A stretch of DNA of 64,000 bases from Paramoeba atlantica (taxonomy: Eukaryota > Protista > Discosea): contig CDRNVI010000039.1 in the NCBI GenBank assembly GCA_977017575.1, positions 1-64,000 of the forward strand. The letters run 5' to 3'. Numbering within the stretch: the stretch's first letter is position 1; each line of letters starts with the position of its first letter. The position numbers and the translations under genes are program-made. The notes beneath the pieces were generated by a model. It saw only the letters and a program-made list of their open reading frames with translations. It was not told the DNA's origin and made no database searches. Below are positions 8,102 through 58,518 of the stretch, piece by piece.

Positions 8102-8121
8102 TATTATATTCGTCTTCCTGT

Positions 8122-8202
8122 GCTATTAAGATACAGTTAAGATACAGTGTTAAGACAGTGTTAAGATACAGTTTCTGTACCTTGTTGGTACATTTTCGCT
8201 AG
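8122..8202 (+). ncRNA. Spliced-leader (mini-exon) RNA-like relic with internal tandem duplications
   Basis: GCTATTAAGATACAG...GATACAGTTTCTGTACCTTGTTG|GTAC matches the kinetoplastid SL core CAGTTTCTGTAC-n7-GTA. The first ~7 nt of a canonical SL are absent; TTAAGATACAG occurs 4 times (one copy with a 2-nt deletion). Confidence 0.65.
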
Positions 8203-11824: not shown

Positions 11825-12376
11825 TTCCCAATTTTATACCGTCTTCAAGCCTCTTGAAACGTTTGTTTTTATGTGGTATCTCGCCACAGATAATACGGGG
11901 TGTATTCGCCCACAAAAGTGCTTCTAAAGACATACCGGCACATTTTCTTCCGTTTTTCACAAGATTGAGCTGAGAAACACCAAGAATGAAAACATTATGC
12001 AGCTCAGACGATTCATAGAGAGAAGAGGGGATTCGAAACGTGGACAAAAATGGGTGAAAAGTCAGTAGAATAACCGAATTTGATCAATGAAAGATCATTT
12101 TTGTTTCTAAAAATTTAAGTGAAAAACGGAGAAAAATTCAAAAAATTGGGGTACATTTTCACCATAAAATACCCACTTTTTCTTTTCCTTTGTCGGTAAG
12201 AGAACAGAATTGCTCTGAAATTTCGGCAAAATATCCCAACATTGTCGGTTTCGTGACTGTCGAAAGAGCCTCGCCCTACTCATCAGAGGTCGAACTCCTC
12301 CGCACGGGTAAACTAAACCAACTGTACGAATATTATTCGCACCTTTTTATTACTATTAGTATTCGCAATACACTTA

Positions 12377-13126
12377 CAGGGGTATCAACTTCCATTTGGG
12401 GGGGTCTAAAAATTGTAAAACTTGGCCAATTTTGGAAAATAATGGCGCATTGGAGAGTTCTCGCAGAATTGTATGTCTTTGGCATATTCGGAATGCTCAA
12501 CTTGAAAGATCTAATTTAAAAGAAAAAAGTATTGTTTTTTTCACGTGAAAGTGTGGCAATTTTTCATTTTTTACCCATTTTATGACCACAAAAACGAGTT
12601 TGCTTAAGGATTCCCCTGGTGTTTTGATCGCGCGTTCATATGCTTTACCATGGAAGATTAGGTAATGTAACGGAATGCTTCTTGTGGCAGACTTCGAGAA
12701 AACACAGACTTATTCCCGGACTTACCTAAATTTTCGTGTCCACTAGGAAACTGTGAAACACTGAGTGGAAGGGTTCATGTTTTTAATGATAAACGTCAGA
12801 GAAAAGACAAAGTGAAATTTGAGTGCGTTAAAAAACTTTAAAAAACGTATAGAATTGACGTAGAGAAAAAGAGGGCACATTGCGGATGCTACATGGGCTT
12901 GAAAAAAATGAGTGTTAAAAAACCTGAGATTTTTTTGTCATTTCTTTAAGTGACAATTCGCATTTTTGGCCTATTCGGCATTCGTAGTTCTAATTTGATA
13001 TGATAAAAGCTACCAGTGCAAAGACATACAACTCTGCGAGCGCTCTCCAAAGCGCCATTATTTTCCAAAATTGAGAAGTTTTTATAAATTTTAGACCCCC
13101 CCCCCAAATGGAAGTTGACACCCCTG
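12377..13126. mobile_element. MITE (750 bp) with ~110-bp TIRs of the CAGGGG/DD32E family
   Basis: TA|CAGGGGTATCAACTTCCATTTGGGGGGGTCTAAAAATT... and ...GGAAGTTGACACCCCTG|TA; no ORF inside. Confidence 0.92.
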
Positions 13127-13752
13127 TATTATTCGCAAAAAGACCTATGATTCCCATTTTTTATTATTCGCATTTTTTGGTTTCGTATTTTTTTTATATA
13201 TAATTCACCATTATTGAAAATCAAGTAATCCATTATGTCCTAAAATTGAAATCTTTTTGTCATATAGTGCGTACACAGTGTTCCTTGGTCTCTTACTATG
13301 TCGGTATTCAAATCTAACATATTTTGTATATCCTATTGCATATTATATTTTTGGGCCCTATAATAAACTAACTGTAATAACTTACGATTGGGCAATCTCC
13401 TGGTTAGCATTGCGGCCCATTCGCAAGTTATCAATCCCCAACGCTTAGTGTACAATTTTGAGAAGGTAGTGCATGTGACCATTAAAACATGCGTAAGTTT
13501 TGGTAGTGTAAATGCGGTGCCCGCCACATTCATAACACGAGAGTCTGCTTTCATACTCCAGAAATGCCCAGTTCCCAAAGCTCAAAGCAGAAAATTTAAA
13601 AATATTTTTTTTTTGGCCAGTCGGGTTTGTCCCCAAGTCTCAGCAAACAATATGTGAATAAAAGTAATTGTATGTAAGTGAATGAAGATAAAGAGTTAGA
13701 TAAAAGATTTTTTTTTTCGTCAGCACGGTCTCGGTATGTGTTTTCTTCGTGA

Positions 13753-14604
13753 TCAATTAGCACTAAATTCGCGGCTGTAGGAATCGGCCATGTTTTCCTT
13801 GGTGTTTACATATGATGGTGTTATATGCAATCCTCTTCCTTCGGCATAGGGAAGTATTCTCTCTAATGTGGCTGAGAGTTGCTGGGAGTCAGACCAGCGT
13901 TTACGTAGGGCTGCTTCGACACTGGTGTTGTCTACTCGGAGTTGGATCTTTCGGAATTGCGTCCAGCGATCCTCGAACGCGGTGAGCGCATGTTGAACAG
14001 CGAGGGTTTCGCCAGCGTTTATCTCCATCGGTGCGTTCCACGGTGCCCCTGTGGCGTGTACAGGGCCGGTAGGTAATATCAACACAGCACCCCAACCCTT
14101 CAAAGAGGCATCAGTATAAAGGACGGCTGGCTGCCCGTTGGGTACGGGCTCGTATCTTTTTAGCTCGTTGGTGCGTATTTTTGCTAGCCATCTGTTCAGT
14201 TGATCTAAAACGCACGGCGATAAATCGAGCAAGGTATTGTCATTTATGATGCCTTTGTTTATTCGAGAAATTTGCCTTCGTGTGTATTTGATGCACCGGT
14301 AAAACTGTGGAAGGTATATCTTTAGGACGGAGCTTGCATAAACTAATCTGGCTACGCCTGATTCCAGCTGGTAGAACGGGATCCTGCCGGGAAATGTTTG
14401 AGGCAAATTGGAAATAAATCGGTCCGACAGATTATATTGTTTTGTATCGTGGTTGTAATTTACGCCTAGGAATTGATACTTGCTGCCATTGACGGTTTCA
14501 TCAGGATCGAAAGTCATACGCAAATCTCTTGCTCGGGCTTCCAGCCACTTCTCATATTTGTGTCGTTCTACTTCTGGACCTGTCTATCGAAGCCCATCAA
14601 GATA
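13753..14604 (-). pseudogene. RT C-terminus plus DIRS-type RNase H of the YR retrotransposon
   Basis: YLDG, FLGV, LYTDASLKGWGAV, INAGETLAV, VDNTSV, NMADSYSR; one in-frame TAG at 14586-14584. Confidence 0.9.
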
Positions 14605-14606
14605 TA

Positions 14607-16184
14607 CAGGGGGGTAAATCAGATGCTGCGGGGGGTCTAAAAATTGCAAAACCCTTCAAATTTTGGAAAATGATAGCGCATTCGAGAGCTCTCGCAGAGT
14701 TCTATGTTTTTGCGCTATTTTCACCCCAAAAGAAAGCAATTTTGTTTATGGCATTTTTTTTAAAGTTTTTTTGCCCCTCTAAAATTTGCAGTTTTTCCCA
14801 AATTTGCTCATTTTTTCGTTTTTTCTCCATTTTGTCTCAGTTTTATGCCGCGAAAGCGATCCCGTTCTATGCAGAACAAAGGATCTCTCTCCGATAGGGC
14901 GTACTCCTCCCCTGGGCACACCGAATATTCACATAGGATGCTTCTTGTAAAAGATTACGAGAATACAAATTCCTATAGTGCGACTTGCCGAAGAGAAGGC
15001 GTCCACCACAGCACTGTCAAGTTGTGGGTGAAACGCTTTGAGGAAACCGGGGACGTTGAACGTTCCACACCCCCTCGCGAACGCACTGTGGCGACACCCG
15101 GGCTTCTTGATGCGTGCCACGAGATTATTGACACGGCCAACACGTCGAGCACACGCGGTTGTCCCTCCTGGAATTTTATACTTCGAGAGGTCAGGAAACG
15201 AGGTTTCACCTGCAGCAGGCCAACTGTAGTAAATTTTTTGAAGGACGCAGGGATAATCCAACGTTCTTTTTCGAAAGGCCTTTTTTAACTGAATCTCATA
15301 AGGCCAAGCGACTAACCTTTGCATTGAAAATGCAGAAGTGGTCTGTCGCACAGCTTCGTCACATAATTTGGTGTGACGAAAAAAAATTCACTTGCCAGCT
15401 TGGACAGGAAAGCCGCTCGTACATTTGCAGAGCAAGTGACCCCCCGAAACCACCTCTAAAAGCTTCGCAAAAGTGGTTTGGGGGGGTGGAGTGAACGTTT
15501 GGATGGGTATAAGCTTTATTTATGGATTTTTTTATGATGTTTTTCCAAACAGGGACAGTAATGGGAAAATTACCATCACTTCAGATGTTTTTAAATGCGC
15601 GATGACAAAAAGAGTGGTTTTTTTAAGTTTCTTAAAGCGTCATAGCGGGGCCCGGGTTGCTATGGATAATGCTCCTTGCCACAATGGCAGTTTTAGAACC
15701 TTTAAAGAAAACGAAGTCGTTGTTTTGGACTTTCCCCCAAAATCCCCAGATCTTAACCCCATTGAAAACATTTGGGAAATTATGGATGCCTTTATTAAAA
15801 ATGGTACAAATCCAGAAAATAGGACTGAACTCTTGTTTTCTATTGAAAGAGCGGTTGATTACATTAAAACAGATGGTCATGACATGCTCATTAACACTTT
15901 AAACAGCATGCCGCGGCGTTTCGACATAGTAGTAGAAAAAAAGGAGAAAGTTGTAATTATTAGTCGTCTAAAACCTTTCTCACAATTTTTGCATTTTGAC
16001 GTTTTTGGGCTTCTTGTCAGTTGAACACCCCCCTATACCCCGGGAAACTGCCTTTTCTAAAACATAGAACTCTTCGAGAGCTCTCGAATACTAATAATAA
16101 ATCTCGAATAAATAATATCATTTTCCAAAATTGGAAAGGTTTTGCAATTTTTAGACCCCCCGCAGCATCTGATTTACCCCCCTG
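14607..16184 (+). mobile_element. Complete Tc1-like element C (1578 bp), DD32E
   Basis: TIRs identical over the first 47 nt (CAGGGGGGTAAATCAGATGCTGCGGGGGGTCTAAAAATTGCAAAACC), then imperfect; TA at 14605-14606 and 16185-16186. Confidence 0.95.
14845..15963 (+). pseudogene. Transposase of element C with three -1 frameshifts (possibly assembly errors)
   Basis: ORFs 14845, 15159 and 15473 carry consecutive parts (MPRKRSRS..., WCDEKKF, AMDNAPCH...PPKSPDLNPIE); adding one base to the runs at ~15275, ~15480-15486 and ~15935-15942 gives one ORF ending KKGESCNY*. Confidence 0.88.
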
Positions 16185-16967
16185 TATATCACAGTTTCCT
16201 GAGCAGGAATATGGTTCATCCACATACTCAGGCTGTCCAGCGAGTACTGAAGTTAGAATTTGTTGCACCTCAGGAGCACACATATGGCCCATTGGAACTC
16301 TCGTCATTTGATAAACCTTGTCTTCGAATATGAATCGGTAGTAAGGCCTAGACAACTTCGGCAATGGAATCTGACAAAATCCGCAGCGTAAATCGCGTTT
16401 CACGGCACCAGATGTTTCGAGTTTTGGAAGATACGAGCTCGACTGTTCAATGGGAACATCAGCATGATATACACCCTTTAAAGCTGCATTATGGGCCTCC
16501 GGCCAACATATGAATCTTCGTCGTGGCCCTGAGTCCCGCACCTCTACTGTAGTAAACGGTTTCACATAGGCTTTTGTCGGTTGTGAATGGAGGGATTCAT
16601 GTGATAGGTGTTCGATAATACCCGTATCGGTCAGTACTTTGATATCATCTCTTGAAAGTGAATTGTTGACACTGATAGCCTCCTGGGAAAACACATCTCG
16701 TGGAATATCTGGCTTAAGAATGTGGTAGTACACCTCATTGAATCGTTTGAGGGTGGAATCGGACATTAGATGCGTGGCTTTATCCAAGTCAAGAGTGTCA
16801 ACTGCCTTTGCGTGCAACGGATATTTCATTTCTTTCGGTCCTGGCTTGGAAGTACGTGCTTTTGTTCTGTTAAAAGTTCGACGCGGTCGCCAGAGTGCTT
16901 CGTCCTGATCACGTTGCCAATTTACTGTCGTTATTTCGAAATTCGTTGCGTTCTCTGAAGATATCAT
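16185..16967 (-). pseudogene. RT N-terminal part of the YR retrotransposon
   Basis: RRRFICWP, KRDLRCGFCQIPL, YQMTRVPMGHMCAPEVQQ are DIRS/VIPER-type RT motifs; the ORF runs into the Tc1 TIR at the TA. Confidence 0.88.
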
Positions 16968-17153
16968 AGCAGTCTGGTTGCATTTTGTGTTCCCAAAGCG
17001 ATGGCCGCTGTAGCGTTTATTCCGGCATATCGGAGGAGTGTCTGCAGGTGCTTGTGTTTCGTCAGTCTCATTATTTCTTCTAGAGTAAGTTTCCCTTTTC
17101 CCACCTCCTCCATCAGTACATGGACTGCACCGTGTTTTAATGAATGGCTCGTA
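16964..17153 (-). pseudogene. Tyrosine recombinase C-terminal part (box II)
   Basis: After removing the MITE: YTSHSLKHGAVHVLM...IMRLTKHKHLQTLLRYAG..., i.e. HxxK/R, H and catalytic Y. Confidence 0.85.
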
Positions 17154-17155
17154 TA

Positions 17156-18134
17156 CCGTTACCCCCCCCTTACTTCGCCTCCCCCCTTACTTCACCACAT
17201 TTAGTCGCTGGACGTGTGGTGAAGTAAGGGGGGTGTCGGATTTTTCTCAGACAACTTACCACCTCTTTACACAGCCGGGGGGGGGGGGTGCACTGCAACC
17301 GACCGTTGCATCGGGGTAAGGCGAGGCAGAGCCACGCCCAGTGATCTTCAAGGAGGGACACAGATGGCGCACAAACATCGATGAACAAAGGTTCTTGGTG
17401 CACACGTCGGTGAAGACGACGCCGTCATACCAGGATTTTAAACCACAGTCCGGTTTAACGTTCCGGGGGGAAATGATAACGGTTACAGGAATGCTACGTA
17501 GCTGCAGGAATGATAACTTTTGAAGATTGTCTTGGGTTTACCGTACGATTCGTCGACGCAACGGGTTGGTAGCAGCGCGTTGTTGCCGCCTTGTACTAAC
17601 GAAAACAGGTAGAGGACTTCGGCCTCGAAACTTCCAAATCTGTCTGTGAAGGGCCTGGCTTGCTAGTGACCGATCGGAGCTATCCGGAATGATTTAGTAT
17701 GTTGAACCATTTCTAATTCAGAACGATTTTCTTCCATGTCAGTTTCATCATCATGTCAGTTTGATCATAAAATTGCGCCACAGTGTTTTGTAGTTCTAAA
17801 ATTTAAATTGGTGTTCAATGGGTTATGTTCTGCGACACCATTTAAATTTCACGATCTAAGAAATTTTCATGGGGGGAAAGTTAAAAGCCCATGGGACATT
17901 GTAGACAAGCTAAACGAAATATAAAATATAGAATGTGCAACACGAGGTATTACAACACTCAAGAAAAGGAAATTACGCCCAATGTCGATAGCATAGTGTA
18001 CTTCAATAATTTGAGGATTTTCGAGAGAACTATAAATTGATCGAACTTTGAATCATTTATTCACCCCCCTTACTTCACCACAAAGTACGGGTCTTGGGCC
18101 AAAAAGTGGGGGCTAAGTAAGGGGGGGGTAACGG
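17156..18134. mobile_element. MITE, CCGT family, copy 2 (979 bp)
   Basis: Same termini as 4539-5535; TA at 17154-17155 and 18135-18136; only a few differences seen by eye. Confidence 0.92.
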
Positions 18135-18535
18135 TACTGTTTTCCTAAGCGAGTCGAAAGGGCCCTCGTAATTTCCTGCGTGGTTGTATTTGATATGCAA
18201 TCCTGTGGGTGCATGGGAAAAAGGTAACGATATATTTGCGGCGTGAATCTTCCGTCTATGACCGTGAACGCATCTGGGCGGAAAGGCTCTGTTTTTGCGC
18301 TCTTTTCCTGAAAAATTAAGGTTGTGTACACAGTAAACCTTGAAGCGAACTTTTTTATATTTTTTTGCGACCTTTCAAGTGGAACCATGGATTCGGATAC
18401 GACAAAAGAATAACGGGAGATACTGTTCCATTTTAGTCGTGCCTTGTCAACAGAGCTTTTAGTATTTTCCTCGTTCACAATAGCCTGGGTCATAGAGCAC
18501 ATGTTCCTCAGACGTCGAGTTCGAACCCCGCTCAT
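18135..18535 (-). pseudogene. Tyrosine recombinase N-terminal part
   Basis: LKWNSISRYS (candidate box I Arg) and EKSAKT (candidate catalytic Lys); joins in frame to 17153-16964, giving 196 aa. Confidence 0.78.
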
Positions 18536-18887
18536 GGAACATAATTCCCGGCGGCCTCACTCCAGGAGGCTGGGTTGAGAATCGACTAGGCCCAGTACTC
18601 GAAGGACCGGTCAGGACCCCTCTCAGGGAGCCAGGTACCTTACACGGCTTACACCTCTTGGGTTAGCCGTGTTGACGTACAATTCGTCGTAATCGATTCG
18701 TCCTTTCGCGGTGACGTCGTATTTTTTCTTCCGGAGAGAAATATTTTGAATTTTGTTGATGAACAGACCGACAACCAACTCAAATGTTTCGGAAGATTTT
18801 GGTGAAAATCTAAAAAAAATCCGTTAATTATTATTCCGTTAATTTTCATTCCAATGATTTTTATTCCTTTAATAAGTGCTTTGACGG

Positions 18888-19242
<355 letters not shown>

Positions 19243-20488
19243 GGACATACGAGTGCAGAGCAGAATTTTTCCAAAGTTCCGGTGTGATAGAACCTGGAGA
19301 GTTCACGAAAAACACCAAAAAAGATTCCTCGGTGATATTCCCCGGTGTATTACCAACACTGTGCACCTCTAGTAATCGTTCAAGCCGAAAGAAGCACGTT
19401 GTTCTTTTTCACCTGTTGGGGGCGCTGCTGCATATCATATTGCGAGATACATGAAAATTGCGAGCCGTTGATGAAAATGACCCTGTTTTCTCGAAATTTT
19501 CAACCAGCAACATTATAAAAAAAGGGGGGGTTATGTGTTAGTTTTGTTTTATTTGAGGGTGAGAAACGGTTCTCCGAGAATTTCCCTCGAAGAACGTGAA
19601 TGTAACCCGATTTTGGGGCATCAATGTCCAAAAAAGGGAAAAAACAGGCAAAAAAATGCGAATTTTACAACCTGAAAAAACGTAATTTTACTCTAAAATG
19701 CGTTGTGTGTGAAAGCATGGGAAACGACATGTAAGTAGGCGATGTTGACCTGCTTTGTTTGCATTTGCGCCCTGTTTAGCAAGGAAAGGTGAGCAAGCCA
19801 CATACAATTTTTTTGGCATCGGAAGGGGTGGGGAAGGATTTCGGCGTGTATGCCTTGATACGACCTCATAATAGGTTGTGTGGGAGCAGGCACGAATTTC
19901 GCCGATAGGGGAATCTGCACGAGAATGCGATAGGAGATCTGTGTGACAAAACGTGAGCCGCAGTGACAACACTAGAGTTTCCCCCTGATCGAGGGCCTTG
20001 CATTGGTGTATTGTAGGTCAGCAAGAAGGAAACGAACAAAAGATAAAAATCTTGCTCCCATGGTCCGAACGGACCCTCCTGGAGCACCTTCGAAAACCAT
20101 TTGAATTCTAAATCTGTTTTATTTTCGAAATAACTTTGTTTCTGTGAATCTCGACCCCTGGTATGTTCTCGTTTTCCCTGGAACCTCATGCCTTCCCCTA
20201 GACTCCCTCCGCCTGAACGCTCGCCCCGAACCCCCTCCCTGAACTCCCCTTTACCACCCCCTAGAACCCCCTGGACCCCCCGAATTCTCCTTAGACTCTC
20301 AAGTCCTAAAATCCTTTTGCTGAATTTCGGATCCCCCTATTTTTTCCTTTCCTATTCTATTACTGGGGGTCTACGGTTTTTCGAAGCTAGGAATCAAAAT
20401 TAGTGTTGAATTTTTACGTGCTGAATTTTACGACGCGTTTTTGATATCGTTACAGATTTTTTTTATTACATTTTGATATTATATCCGC

Positions 20489-55130: not shown

Positions 55131-55311
55131 AAACGAAGTTGTGGGTTCCCCTTTCAAAGGAACGTGCTCTTACCGTAACTGTGGAAGGTTATGGTGCTCT
55201 TGTGAGTTGTGTTTTGATTATAAAACAATAATTTGTGATTGCATGATTTGGTAGTCGAGTTTCTATTGTATTTGCGAAAAAATATCCTTCTATATTCGCA
55301 TTCTTTTGCCG

Positions 55312-56226
55312 ATGTTTTCGCTGATGACTTCTGGAATGTATACGGAAGACATCAGCATTTCGGAAATTTCTCGTGATTCATCCTCAAAGACACGTTCTGG
55401 AAGAGTCCAAGGTGCTGAGTTGCCTCCGGAATACGATCTGCAGCGGCTTGTACAATTTTTTGATAACGCTCAAGATTTGTGGGATATGGATGCACCAGCA
55501 AACGAGTGGTATGGAGTGACATGTACAAATACGGGGAAAATCTCTGTCATTGACTGGAAGTCATATGAATTGGGGGGAGTGTTGCGGAGTAAGTTCTTGC
55601 CTCGTTCCCTGGAGTTCCTCCATCTGACGGGAAACAGTTTTTCAGGAGAACTGGATTTGTCTGTACTTCCACCGTTAATTCAAGTGGTTTACCTTTCAGA
55701 CAACGCATTTACTGGGGGCCTAGACTTGGATCACTTACCAGCTTCGGTAGAATATTTAGATGTTCATGACAATCTCTTTCAAGGACGAATAAATCTCATG
55801 TCTCTTCCGCATTCCCTCATTTCTTTAAATTTGTCACACAATAAACTGTCAGGAGCTGTATCTCTTACCAGTCTTCCGCGTAAGCTAACTGATCTTGACC
55901 TTTCACGAAACTGGTTTTCTGACGAAATCGATCTAACGAATTTGCCAGCGGGATTAAGATGCCTGAGTCTTCACCATAATCGCTTTTCAGGTCGTCTTGA
56001 AATGACGAAGTTAGCCCCTCGACTGGACAGAATGCTCTTGGGCAGTAATTTATTCGAAGGATACACTGAGTTGACTAGTTTGCCGAAGAGTTTGGTAGAA
56101 CTTGATCTTAGCGACAATGAAGGATTAACGGGAGAGATTGATCAGAGACGAGTAGCCACGTTTTATTTAGGTTTAAGAATATCAGGCACGAAAGTAGCTG
56201 TTCGGGGGTATCAGTCACGAAGGTAG
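55312..56226 (+). CDS. LRR protein (family)
   Basis: RSGRVQGAELPPEYDL, WYGVTC, about nine LRRs. Confidence 0.9.
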   Translation: MFSLMTSGMYTEDISISEISRDSSSKTRSGRVQGAELPPEYDLQRLVQFFDNAQDLWDMDAPANEWYGVTCTNTGKISVIDWKSYELGGVLRSKFLPRSLEFLHLTGNSFSGELDLSVLPPLIQVVYLSDNAFTGGLDLDHLPASVEYLDVHDNLFQGRINLMSLPHSLISLNLSHNKLSGAVSLTSLPRKLTDLDLSRNWFSDEIDLTNLPAGLRCLSLHHNRFSGRLEMTKLAPRLDRMLLGSNLFEGYTELTSLPKSLVELDLSDNEGLTGEIDQRRVATFYLGLRISGTKVAVRGYQSRR

Positions 56227-56832: not shown

Positions 56833-56971
56833 CGTAAAGAAAGAAGCAGAGGTTGTAAATAAATCTGGTTGTAATTAAATCTCAGAAAAAAAAATCATTA
56901 TCATTATTGTTAGAGAGTGTGTATTGCATCATCCATCAATCTTGAATGCGAACATTTGTACTTTGATATAC

Positions 56972-57585
56972 ACAGGGCGAAAACCTGTAGAGATACTGGG
57001 CTCAGCAGAGGTTGACGCAAAGGGCGCTCCCTGCTGAACCTGTCGCCTTCCTCTGCTACACCGAGAAAAGTACGGAATGTCCGCCGAGGGGGAACGAAAA
57101 GAACGGCTTCATCGGGTTAAGATGTCCCGATACGGGACGAGAGCGTAGTCCTGCCATACGAATTCGTAGGACGAGGATGGTACTCCCATCGTACATGCTA
57201 CAAATGACTTACATGGTTCATGATACAACATGGTCAAGGCCATGGATACATGCTGGCAAATGGAATGCCACGGTTCATGATGCATCATGGGCATCGGGGT
57301 CCCACCGAGTTCGCCTCGGCTGGTGAGCAAGGGAGGTGTCATAGAGCATCCTCTGCACGCATAGTGCGTAGAACACGCATACGACGTGTTCGCTAGCCGT
57401 GTGGGAATGAGACAAGGGAAGCGCACACCTACTTTATGATAAGAGGGACAGTTTCGATTCCAGCACCGTCCGGAAACGGGCACGTAAAAGTGTTCCCGTT
57501 TCTGGGAGAGAAAAGACGATCTAGAAAAATGTATCAACATGGTACAGAAACTGTATCCTTGAGTATTCACCGGGACACTTTCTCA
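56972..57585 (+). ncRNA. Candidate long structured ncRNA (unassigned)
   Basis: At least eight consecutive stems with G-U pairs favouring +; no convincing ORF; divergent from the tRNA-like unit. Confidence 0.45.
57521..57557 (-). ncRNA. Second spliced-leader-like relic
   Basis: GATACAGTTTCTGTACCATGTTGATACATTTTTCTAG on -; 34 positions match 8165-8202; donor GT is AT here. Confidence 0.65.
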
Positions 57586-57927
57586 AAATTACTTTACTGC
57601 ACTGTACCCTCAGAATAGTGTAACTCAGAGTCTCTGAGTTTCATAGTGCACAGTTCTTCTACGCTACGTATTACACTGACCCCTCTTAATAGTACGATGA
57701 GTAACCCCTATTTGAAAGTTCTTTTTCATCATCGACTCTTTTTTTGAGCCGCAAGTATTGCTGTGTAAGTCCGCCGGGTCACCAAAACTGACAGTGTCCG
57801 CATTTTGCCTCCCCACTTTCCCCCTGTATAGAGCGGCGGGTTTACCAAACGGCGCTATATGAGAAAGTATACATTTTCTACGAAATATCTTTTTTACATT
57901 TTATCAAGAGTTCAAAATACCGACGCG

Positions 57928-58518
57928 ATGTACGTGACATTGAATTTTGCAACTGAAGACTCCAGTTCAAAGCCTAATAAAGTACGAGGTACGGCCCTAC
58001 CGCAAGAATACGAACTTGAAGCTTTTACTAGAAATATGGCACCTCATCATGTAACGTGGAACACCCACATCCCCGCATGTCAGTGGAAAGGAGTAAAATG
58101 CGACGATGACACAGAAAGTATAGTGACGCATATATCATGGATTTATTATTCGCTAGTAGGTAACCCTCGATGGGAGCACATGCCAATAACCCTGACAGCG
58201 ATCTCTCTTCTAGCGAATCAACTTCAAGGATTGGTCTGTCTTCACCAGCTGCCTCTAGTGATGGCAAACTATAGTGTCTCATACAACTTATTTAATGGAC
58301 CACTCGACTTTTCCCAACTTCCATCTTCTCTCTATCGATTACAACTTGAGAATAATCAATTCTCGGGAAATATTGACCTTTCTTGTTTGCCGTTTGATCT
58401 TGTATCGCTGGGCTTAGCAGGCAATCCTATGCTTGTTGGAACAGTTCGAAAAAATAGTTTCCCCAAGAATTTGATGTACTTTACTTACAGTGAAACTAAC
58501 ATAACGGTAATAGCATAG
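57928..58518 (+). CDS. LRR protein (family)
   Basis: NKVRGTALPQEYEL, ACQWKGVKC, LRRs. Confidence 0.9.
   Translation: MYVTLNFATEDSSSKPNKVRGTALPQEYELEAFTRNMAPHHVTWNTHIPACQWKGVKCDDDTESIVTHISWIYYSLVGNPRWEHMPITLTAISLLANQLQGLVCLHQLPLVMANYSVSYNLFNGPLDFSQLPSSLYRLQLENNQFSGNIDLSCLPFDLVSLGLAGNPMLVGTVRKNSFPKNLMYFTYSETNITVIA

Follow-up and report, generated by a model that had tools for sequence, protein, structure and literature searches.

A decayed element in an intergenic spacer, very probably a copy of a non-autonomous retroposon family with a spliced-leader relic at its 5' end

Introduction

R2-derived SIDEs of Drosophila are short, internally deleted elements that combine the 5' and 3' ends of a LINE, and the RNA of their 3' end is the handle for the R2 protein. 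They stay in the rDNA target and have their 3' UTR in common with a living R2. Another kind of reverse-transcribed sequence is found in dinoflagellates, where retrocopies of host genes carry tandem relics of the spliced leader (SL). The RIME, NARTc and SIDER elements are short, non-coding, dispersed retroposons of kinetoplastids, with a 77-nt Pr77, a poly(A) tail and target-site duplications (TSDs), and they depend on APE-type LINEs of the ingi clade. SLACS, CZAR and CRE are autonomous elements of 6-7 kb and are confined to the SL gene arrays. The insertion point of CZAR and SLACS lies between SL nucleotides 11 and 12 (PMC5814959). RIME, NARTc and SIDER are copied in trans by LINEs, are often located in intergenic regions or UTRs, and are deletion derivatives of LINE ends (PMC12278014, PMC5814959). 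SIRE, the short version of VIPER in T. cruzi, is dispersed, non-coding and makes no TSD (PMC6681497, PMC12278014). It corresponds to the A2-B2 terminal repeats of a tyrosine-recombinase (YR) element.

Here, we analysed a densely base-paired stretch of non-coding DNA and found that it is, very probably, a dead copy, with an internal deletion, of a family of non-autonomous non-LTR retroposons. A full unit of this family measures about 740 nt. The family resembles RIME, NARTc and SIDER in being short, non-coding and dispersed, but it has an SL-derived head, a hairpin followed by a short A-rich tail, and no clear TSD, and its sole physical link is to R2/CRE-like LINEs and not to the ingi clade. 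With the SIDEs it has in common that it is non-autonomous, that it may be built from LINE ends and that a structured 3' RNA may be the handle, whereas its insertions are dispersed and no LINE with its 3' module is among the scored matches. Like the dinoflagellate retrocopies, it carries a DNA-encoded SL piece at the 5' end of a reverse-transcribed sequence; in contrast to them, the relic is inherited as a constant head by families of mobile elements. The candidate helper enzyme falls in the same class as SLACS, CZAR, CRE and R2, with a reverse transcriptase (RT) closest to R2, and the modal 28-nt relic equals the part of the SL downstream of the canonical SLACS/CZAR insertion point (PMC5814959). 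Unlike those elements, the family is made of dispersed 0.74-kb non-coding units at non-SL sites, with the SL piece at their own 5' end. SIRE is of similar size (PMC6681497), whereas the truncation pattern of the family points to target-primed reverse transcription. In behaviour the family is SINE-like, while in build it is more RIME/SIDE-like, and it appears unusual for kinetoplastids in its hard-coded SL piece and its apparent tie to R2/CRE-like elements. No published description of an SL-headed retroposon family was found.

Results

The window, that is, the whole stretch of 64,000 nt of DNA that was analysed, looks kinetoplastid in character, with long intronless ORFs on the same strand and an SL-type sequence, AACTAACG...CAGTTTCTGTAC, present elsewhere in the genome. 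The region 56972-57585 sits in a spacer, with the plus-strand ORF 55306-56226 (an LRR protein) on one side and the plus-strand ORF 57859-58518 on the other. The initial annotation, made from the letters of the window, had read the region on the plus strand as an unannotated large RNA or as the structured part of a non-autonomous retroelement. When the segment 56900-57700 was searched against its own 45.7-Mb assembly, 76 matches were obtained (242 candidates), and the genome contains at least 35 near-full copies, with about 40-130 candidates scored per genome search. The tail of the family alone gave 42 candidates. Apart from one match on contig C37, all matches start exactly at 56972-56973 and stop near 57550-57560, so that the start at 56972 proposed by the initial annotation is a true boundary of the unit. 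The C37 match is 99% identical over the whole query, and since its flanks match as well, it is a duplicated segment or a haplotig. Alignment of 17 copies with their flanks shows ends that are sharp and common to all, and flanks that are unrelated. The region is a dispersed repeat and no unique RNA gene.

The sense direction of the window copy runs from 57560 down to about 56961, and the copy therefore lies antisense in the intergenic spacer of a plus-strand gene array, where an unrelated tRNA-like repeat adjoins it. Its features, in coordinates of the window, are as follows.

56961-57560, minus strand: retroposon copy of about 600 nt; matches to at least 35 other loci stop at the same boundaries
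57535-57560, minus strand: SL relic at the 5' head, reading AAGGATACAGTTTCTGTACCATGTTG, with 2 mismatches to the family head
57407-57534, minus strand: 5' structured module, with an outer stem, a 13-bp hairpin (57470-57505) and the conserved block GAAACTGTCCCTC; common to at least four sister subfamilies
57406-57407, minus strand: junction of a 138-nt internal deletion; columns 169-305 of alignment A1 are absent in the window copy only
57158-57406, minus strand: near-invariant core that includes the CATG-rich imperfect duplication; 97% mean pairwise identity among the other copies
57355-57369, minus strand: 15-nt insertion (local duplication) private to the window copy; columns 343-357 of A1
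56961-57157, minus strand: subfamily-specific 3' module, with the terminal hairpin (56972-56990) and a degenerate A-rich tail (56961-56971); pairing across copies

On the minus strand, the first nucleotides of the unit, up to 28, read ATAAAGATACAGTTTCTGTACCTTGTTG, and GTAC comes next. In the 5' module, the conserved block GAAACTGTCCCTC is able to pair with the SL relic; the possible pairing of the relic with an invariant block downstream is ACAGUUUC with GRAACUGU. The CATG-rich core is the most conserved part of the family. The duplication described there in the initial annotation is present, with 84% identity between 57212-57236 and 57269-57293. The unit ends with a hairpin, CTACAGG-loop-CCTGTA, and then ATGAAyAAAC(A), a 10-12-nt A-rich tail beyond which the flank is unrelated. 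The 3' module is a putative handle for the reverse transcriptase. Compared with all other full copies, the window copy lacks 138 nt at the junction 57406|57407 and has gained its private 15 nt, which accounts for a full unit of about 740 nt and a window copy of about 600 nt. The window copy is 80-87% identical to 12 aligned copies, and its identity to the family is 91% in the core and 75% in the tail. It is old, and it is probably inert.

Truncation in the family is one-sided. Ten independent copies are 5'-truncated, at unit positions 50, 52, 147, 154, 256, 487, 536, 573, 584 and 650, and all ten have kept the 3' end. About four loci have a head and no tail, of which at least one pair is split by a 5-kb insert. 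Locus L037 on contig C99, which resembles a 5.7-kb element with the head and tail of the family, is likewise probably a copy split by inserts, because its interior has no RT or YR domain. In a young subfamily, the tails are 98-100% identical, and independent insertions start at ATAAAG, ACAG, CAG, TTTCTG or TACC, which means that the SL relic was retained to unequal lengths. These young, near-identical copies show recent activity of the family. In the copies with flanks, TSDs of at most 3-6 nt are possible, and they are unconvincing. R2-type elements often leave no TSD. Element copies were also found in pairs or triplets with near-identical flanks (L003/L004/L033, L011/L012, L017/L020/L023, L036/L040 and window/C37). 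Haplotigs or large segmental duplications are probably present in the assembly and inflate the copy counts, and since many copies share identical flanks in pairs, the independent insertions are fewer than the raw matches.

The initial annotation was right that the region is non-coding. No ORF is common to the copies, the ORFs of the copies have no Pfam match, and the same is true for the two chance ORFs of the window copy, 57012-57326 (plus) and 57109-57570 (minus). Sharp ends in many copies, 5' truncation, a variable SL junction, the lack of an ORF and a tail hairpin, taken together, fit a non-autonomous non-LTR retroposon that has spread by target-primed reverse transcription, with the minus strand of the window as the sense strand.

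The dense pairing of the region could be confirmed in part. The listed stems are present in the sequence, and the region folds better than dinucleotide shuffles, with z-scores of -3.8 on the plus strand and -6.2 on the minus strand (20 shuffles each). When the stems are followed into the other copies, some are kept while others are limited to the window copy or to its subfamily. The stem 56972-76/56984-88 is kept, with a switch from A-U to G-C; 57470-80/57495-505 is kept with compensatory changes; and 57176-80/57186-90, 57371-77/57385-91 and the alternative stem 57111-16/57126-31 are kept as well. On the other hand, 57124-29/57133-38 is kept in the closest subfamily only, and 57004-11/57050-57 and 57305-09/57315-19 occur in the window copy alone. 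A four-helix model of the 5' module, compared over 15 sequences from five subfamilies, has 89.7% of cells paired, versus 34-48% in slid controls, and six of its pairs are altered on both sides (16 cells, versus 0-5 in the controls). For the 3' module, the corresponding values over 23 sequences are 94.8% of cells paired versus 41-48%, and 26 doubly changed cells versus 3-7. In the terminal hairpin, one pair is A-U in 12 copies, G-C in 11 and broken in none. These pairing counts are moderate evidence, because the copies are related and the structure was predicted on the same copies, and RNAalifold over the whole unit gave no net covariation. Part of the dense predicted pairing is a conserved feature of the family, with compensatory changes.

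Other readings of this structure did not hold. G-U pairs had been taken to favour the plus strand; the consensus folding energies are equal on both strands, so folding does not decide the strand, and it is the anatomy of the element that points to the minus strand. A pairing of 57119-129 with 57571-580 had been likened to helix P4 of RNase P/MRP. Its second arm falls outside the unit, which ends at 57560, in a flank that differs at every other copy, and this helix is therefore no feature of the element. At gathering thresholds, Rfam gave nothing in the whole window, and around the region nothing relevant at E<=10. Intact young copies searched at E<=5 likewise gave nothing relevant, including no ribozyme family.

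The head of the family is a piece of the SL of the organism. A 28-mer that covers the head was found at 257 sites in the genome with at most 2 mismatches, versus none for the 28-mer read backwards. Twenty sampled head sites fall into at least four subfamilies, which have the head and ~110 nt after it in common, and their upstream flanks are unrelated. The head is assigned to the SL because these 28 nt recur as the 3' part of a 36-nt SL relic at C18:76413 (L064, minus strand), where a poly(A) run, the complete relic, an unrelated 5' UTR and an ORF are found. The locus has the appearance of a trans-spliced mRNA that was retrocopied and joined to an older copy's tail. Aligned from the 3' end of the SL, the 28 nt correspond to SL nucleotides 12-39. 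Some heads are 1-2 nt longer, and in the copies examined the SL portion never extends beyond about 28-30 nt. Pattern searches for the complete SL gave only this one full relic, at a locus unrelated to the family, and canonical kinetoplastid SL patterns found relics in the assembly and no bona fide SL RNA gene. Since the copies stop at 28-30 nt and the sole full relic is unrelated, the SL relic appears to be inherited now and not added in each round.

Two further SL pieces were observed. At 8120-8196 of the window (plus strand), an SL-type head, AGATACAGTTTCTGTACCTTGTTGGTAC, follows three stuttered partial heads; the body behind it is unrelated to the family at 56972, and a similar stutter is seen in L060. 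In L031:1470-1560 (C42:14576), a lone SL piece of 18-26 nt lies between perfect 24-bp direct repeats (GTTGTTATTTTGTTACGTTTAAAG); it may have inserted as a head alone, with a long duplication of the target.

The genome has a second type of RT, with 1002 candidate loci, whose closest solved relative is Bombyx R2 (E 6.6e-21, versus 5.5e-9 for L1 ORF2). Just past the window, a 170-bp satellite harbours one such R2-like LINE, L065. At the 5' end of this LINE is an SL relic, GTTTCTGTACCTTGT, and its tail consists of a hairpin and then TGATAAAATAT, which is the tail architecture of the family in a different sequence; the SL relic and this architecture are all that the two have in common. A tblastx comparison of this LINE with all loci returned mostly matches of a nested MITE. 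The sole physical link is provided by an element of 1.46 kb, of which two copies (L036 on C70 and L040 on C44, 98% identical) are effectively one locus. In it, a segment matching unit positions 12-523 of the family (84-91% identity) precedes the final 720 nt from an R2-like LINE lineage, made up of about 200 C-terminal codons and the 3' UTR. Full-length copies of this lineage are located on C34, C45 and C54. The hairpin followed by an ATGA-A-rich tail is common to the family and to two R2-like LINE tails. As for the 3' module of the family itself, no LINE that carries it was found among the scored matches, and no scored RT match is located upstream of any of the 42 tail candidates or 40 terminal-motif sites. 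The helper LINE is for this reason named by its class and not as an individual element.

Heads and LINEs also occur next to each other. The 3' ends of R2-like LINEs lie 1317-1358 nt past the end of the RT match, and at five loci (C11, C12, C23, C47 and C101), judged by coordinates, heads begin 1343-1447 nt past that point. By chance, about 0.04 such abutments of LINE tail and head would be expected. Heads on C71 and C101 are also located, by the same measure, 3.4-4.1 kb upstream of the RT domain, as the 5' ends of LINEs would be.

The tRNA-like boxes to which the region had been linked belong to another element. The segment 56498-56833 is dispersed in its own right, as a repeat with 82 candidates at 74-84% identity; it has two tRNA-like modules, both on the minus strand, and is not normally adjacent to the SL-headed family. 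ARAGORN and Rfam called no tRNA at these boxes. The neighbourhood thus consists of two unrelated elements in one spacer. The first ~110 nt of the tRNA-like repeat also form short tandems elsewhere. Several other repeats were noticed. Two MITE-like elements, 12375-13128 and 14601-16190, have terminal inverted repeats of 75-87 nt; one of the MITE-like elements in the window splits a YR-RT-RNase H element at 13753-18535, and a related MITE is found inside the R2-like LINE of L065. A long perfect tandem of an 8-bp unit (18792-19400) adjoins the YR element. On contigs C149, C177 and C172, SSU rRNA genes of ~2.1 kb are 40-120 kb apart, in no tight array.

Discussion

In the mechanism that we propose, the element would reach new sites by target-primed reverse transcription of its RNA, with an enzyme supplied by one of the R2/CRE-like LINEs of the genome, which carry a restriction-like endonuclease. 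That enzyme would recognise the 3' hairpin module of the family, and the SL piece, now hard-coded, would be passed on with each copy and not be freshly added each round. Copying by the many R2/CRE-like LINEs of the genome is the most likely route, although none of those scored has the tail of the family. Of the two proposals in the initial annotation, the structured part of a non-autonomous retroelement was essentially right in kind, although the element lies on the opposite strand, has no link to tRNA-like boxes and gave no ribozyme.

The other proposal, a large structured RNA gene of the cell on the plus strand (a divergent RNase MRP, telomerase, vault/SRP-like or new RNA) under upstream tRNA-like boxes, is now very improbable. 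Trypanosomatid small-RNA genes do use divergent upstream tRNA boxes, and the region does fold better than its shuffles. A cellular gene, however, would not be expected in dozens of dispersed copies, some of them 5'-truncated; Rfam has no match at E<=10, the P4-like helix draws on flanking DNA, and the boxes form a repeat of their own that does not adjoin the unit at other loci. RNase MRP and RNase P RNA in particular were rejected on the missing Rfam match, the P4 partner in the flank and the at least 35 copies. Somewhat less remote, but still improbable, is a solo terminal repeat of a VIPER/TATE-type tyrosine-recombinase retrotransposon, that is, a SIRE-like A2-B2 unit. The genome has 589 candidate YR/RT loci, including the one at 13753-18535 of the window, and the likeness in size to SIRE and the lack of clear TSDs at the family copies agree with such a repeat. 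Against it, no copy of the family adjoins a scored YR-type RT match, no A1...B1-A2-B2 layout was seen, and the YR element of the window has nothing in common with the window copy; the one-sided 5' truncation, A-rich 3' end and SL head are as expected if reverse transcription starts at the 3' end, and do not suit a recombination of repeats, and the sole element that physically shares the 5' module carries the tail of an R2-like LINE. Just as hard to sustain as the cellular gene is a DNA transposon of the cut-and-paste type, or a MITE, in which ATACAG...GTACCT at the two ends would be imperfect terminal inverted repeats. The reverse complement of the tail hairpin does resemble the head, and MITE-like elements with terminal inverted repeats occur in the window. 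Both ends are small hairpins, which explains the resemblance, and subfamilies whose tail stem has covaried to GCAGG/CCTGC no longer show it; there is no convincing TSD, and truncation proceeds from the 5' end only. A self-cleaving ribozyme of a retroelement (HDV-like, hammerhead or others) found no support, since neither decayed nor intact copies match an Rfam ribozyme. Two further candidates were rejected: a canonical SINE with a Pol III-derived head, since the head is an SL relic with no tRNA, 7SL or 5S match; and a member of the ingi-clade RIME/NARTc/SIDER group, since the unit has an SL relic at its 5' end and a short A-rich tail in place of Pr77 and poly(A).

Taking the unit as a retroposon, the origin of its head can be considered separately. 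Three observations leave room for a target-derived or functional head: LINE tails abut heads far above chance, the modal relic of 28 nt matches SL nucleotides 12-39 downstream of the canonical SLACS/CZAR nick, and the relic can pair with the invariant block behind it. We tentatively raise, at well below even odds, that the SL head has a function and is inherited as a module in CRE/R2-type elements that left the SL gene arrays, and is not a passive scar of trans-splicing. If this is true, heads would define the 5' end of the RNA, like upstream-cleaving R2 ribozymes, and/or would be landing pads that build head-to-tail trains. More doubtful still is a derivation of the 5' module from the SL RNA gene itself (exon nucleotides 12-39 plus intron), as an SL-RNA-derived SINE or orphon, either through a chimera with SL RNA or through the capture of DNA downstream of a SLACS/CZAR-type insertion. 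GT(AC) does follow the relic at the 257 sites, as an SL intron would, SL nucleotides 1-8 are in no copy, and the modal relic begins where the part downstream of the CZAR/SLACS insertion point, nt 11/12, begins (PMC5814959). Against this origin, the ~740-nt unit far exceeds the length of an SL RNA, the U-rich-looking loop differs between subfamilies, other full or partial SL relics in the genome precede unrelated sequences, some heads reach 1-2 nt past the 28 nt, and the search of the assembly offered no bona fide SL RNA gene for comparison. An origin from the SL RNA gene would concern the head only, and it is compatible with the retroposon explanation of the unit.

For the window, the retroposon explanation means that what looked like a candidate "new large ncRNA" is the decayed copy of a transposon, to be masked and not annotated as a gene. 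Beyond this locus, whether the head is a scar or is derived from the target bears on how site-specific retrotransposons of the SL genes escape their target, and the origin of the head bears on how retroelement RNAs come by defined 5' ends in organisms without gene-specific promoters.
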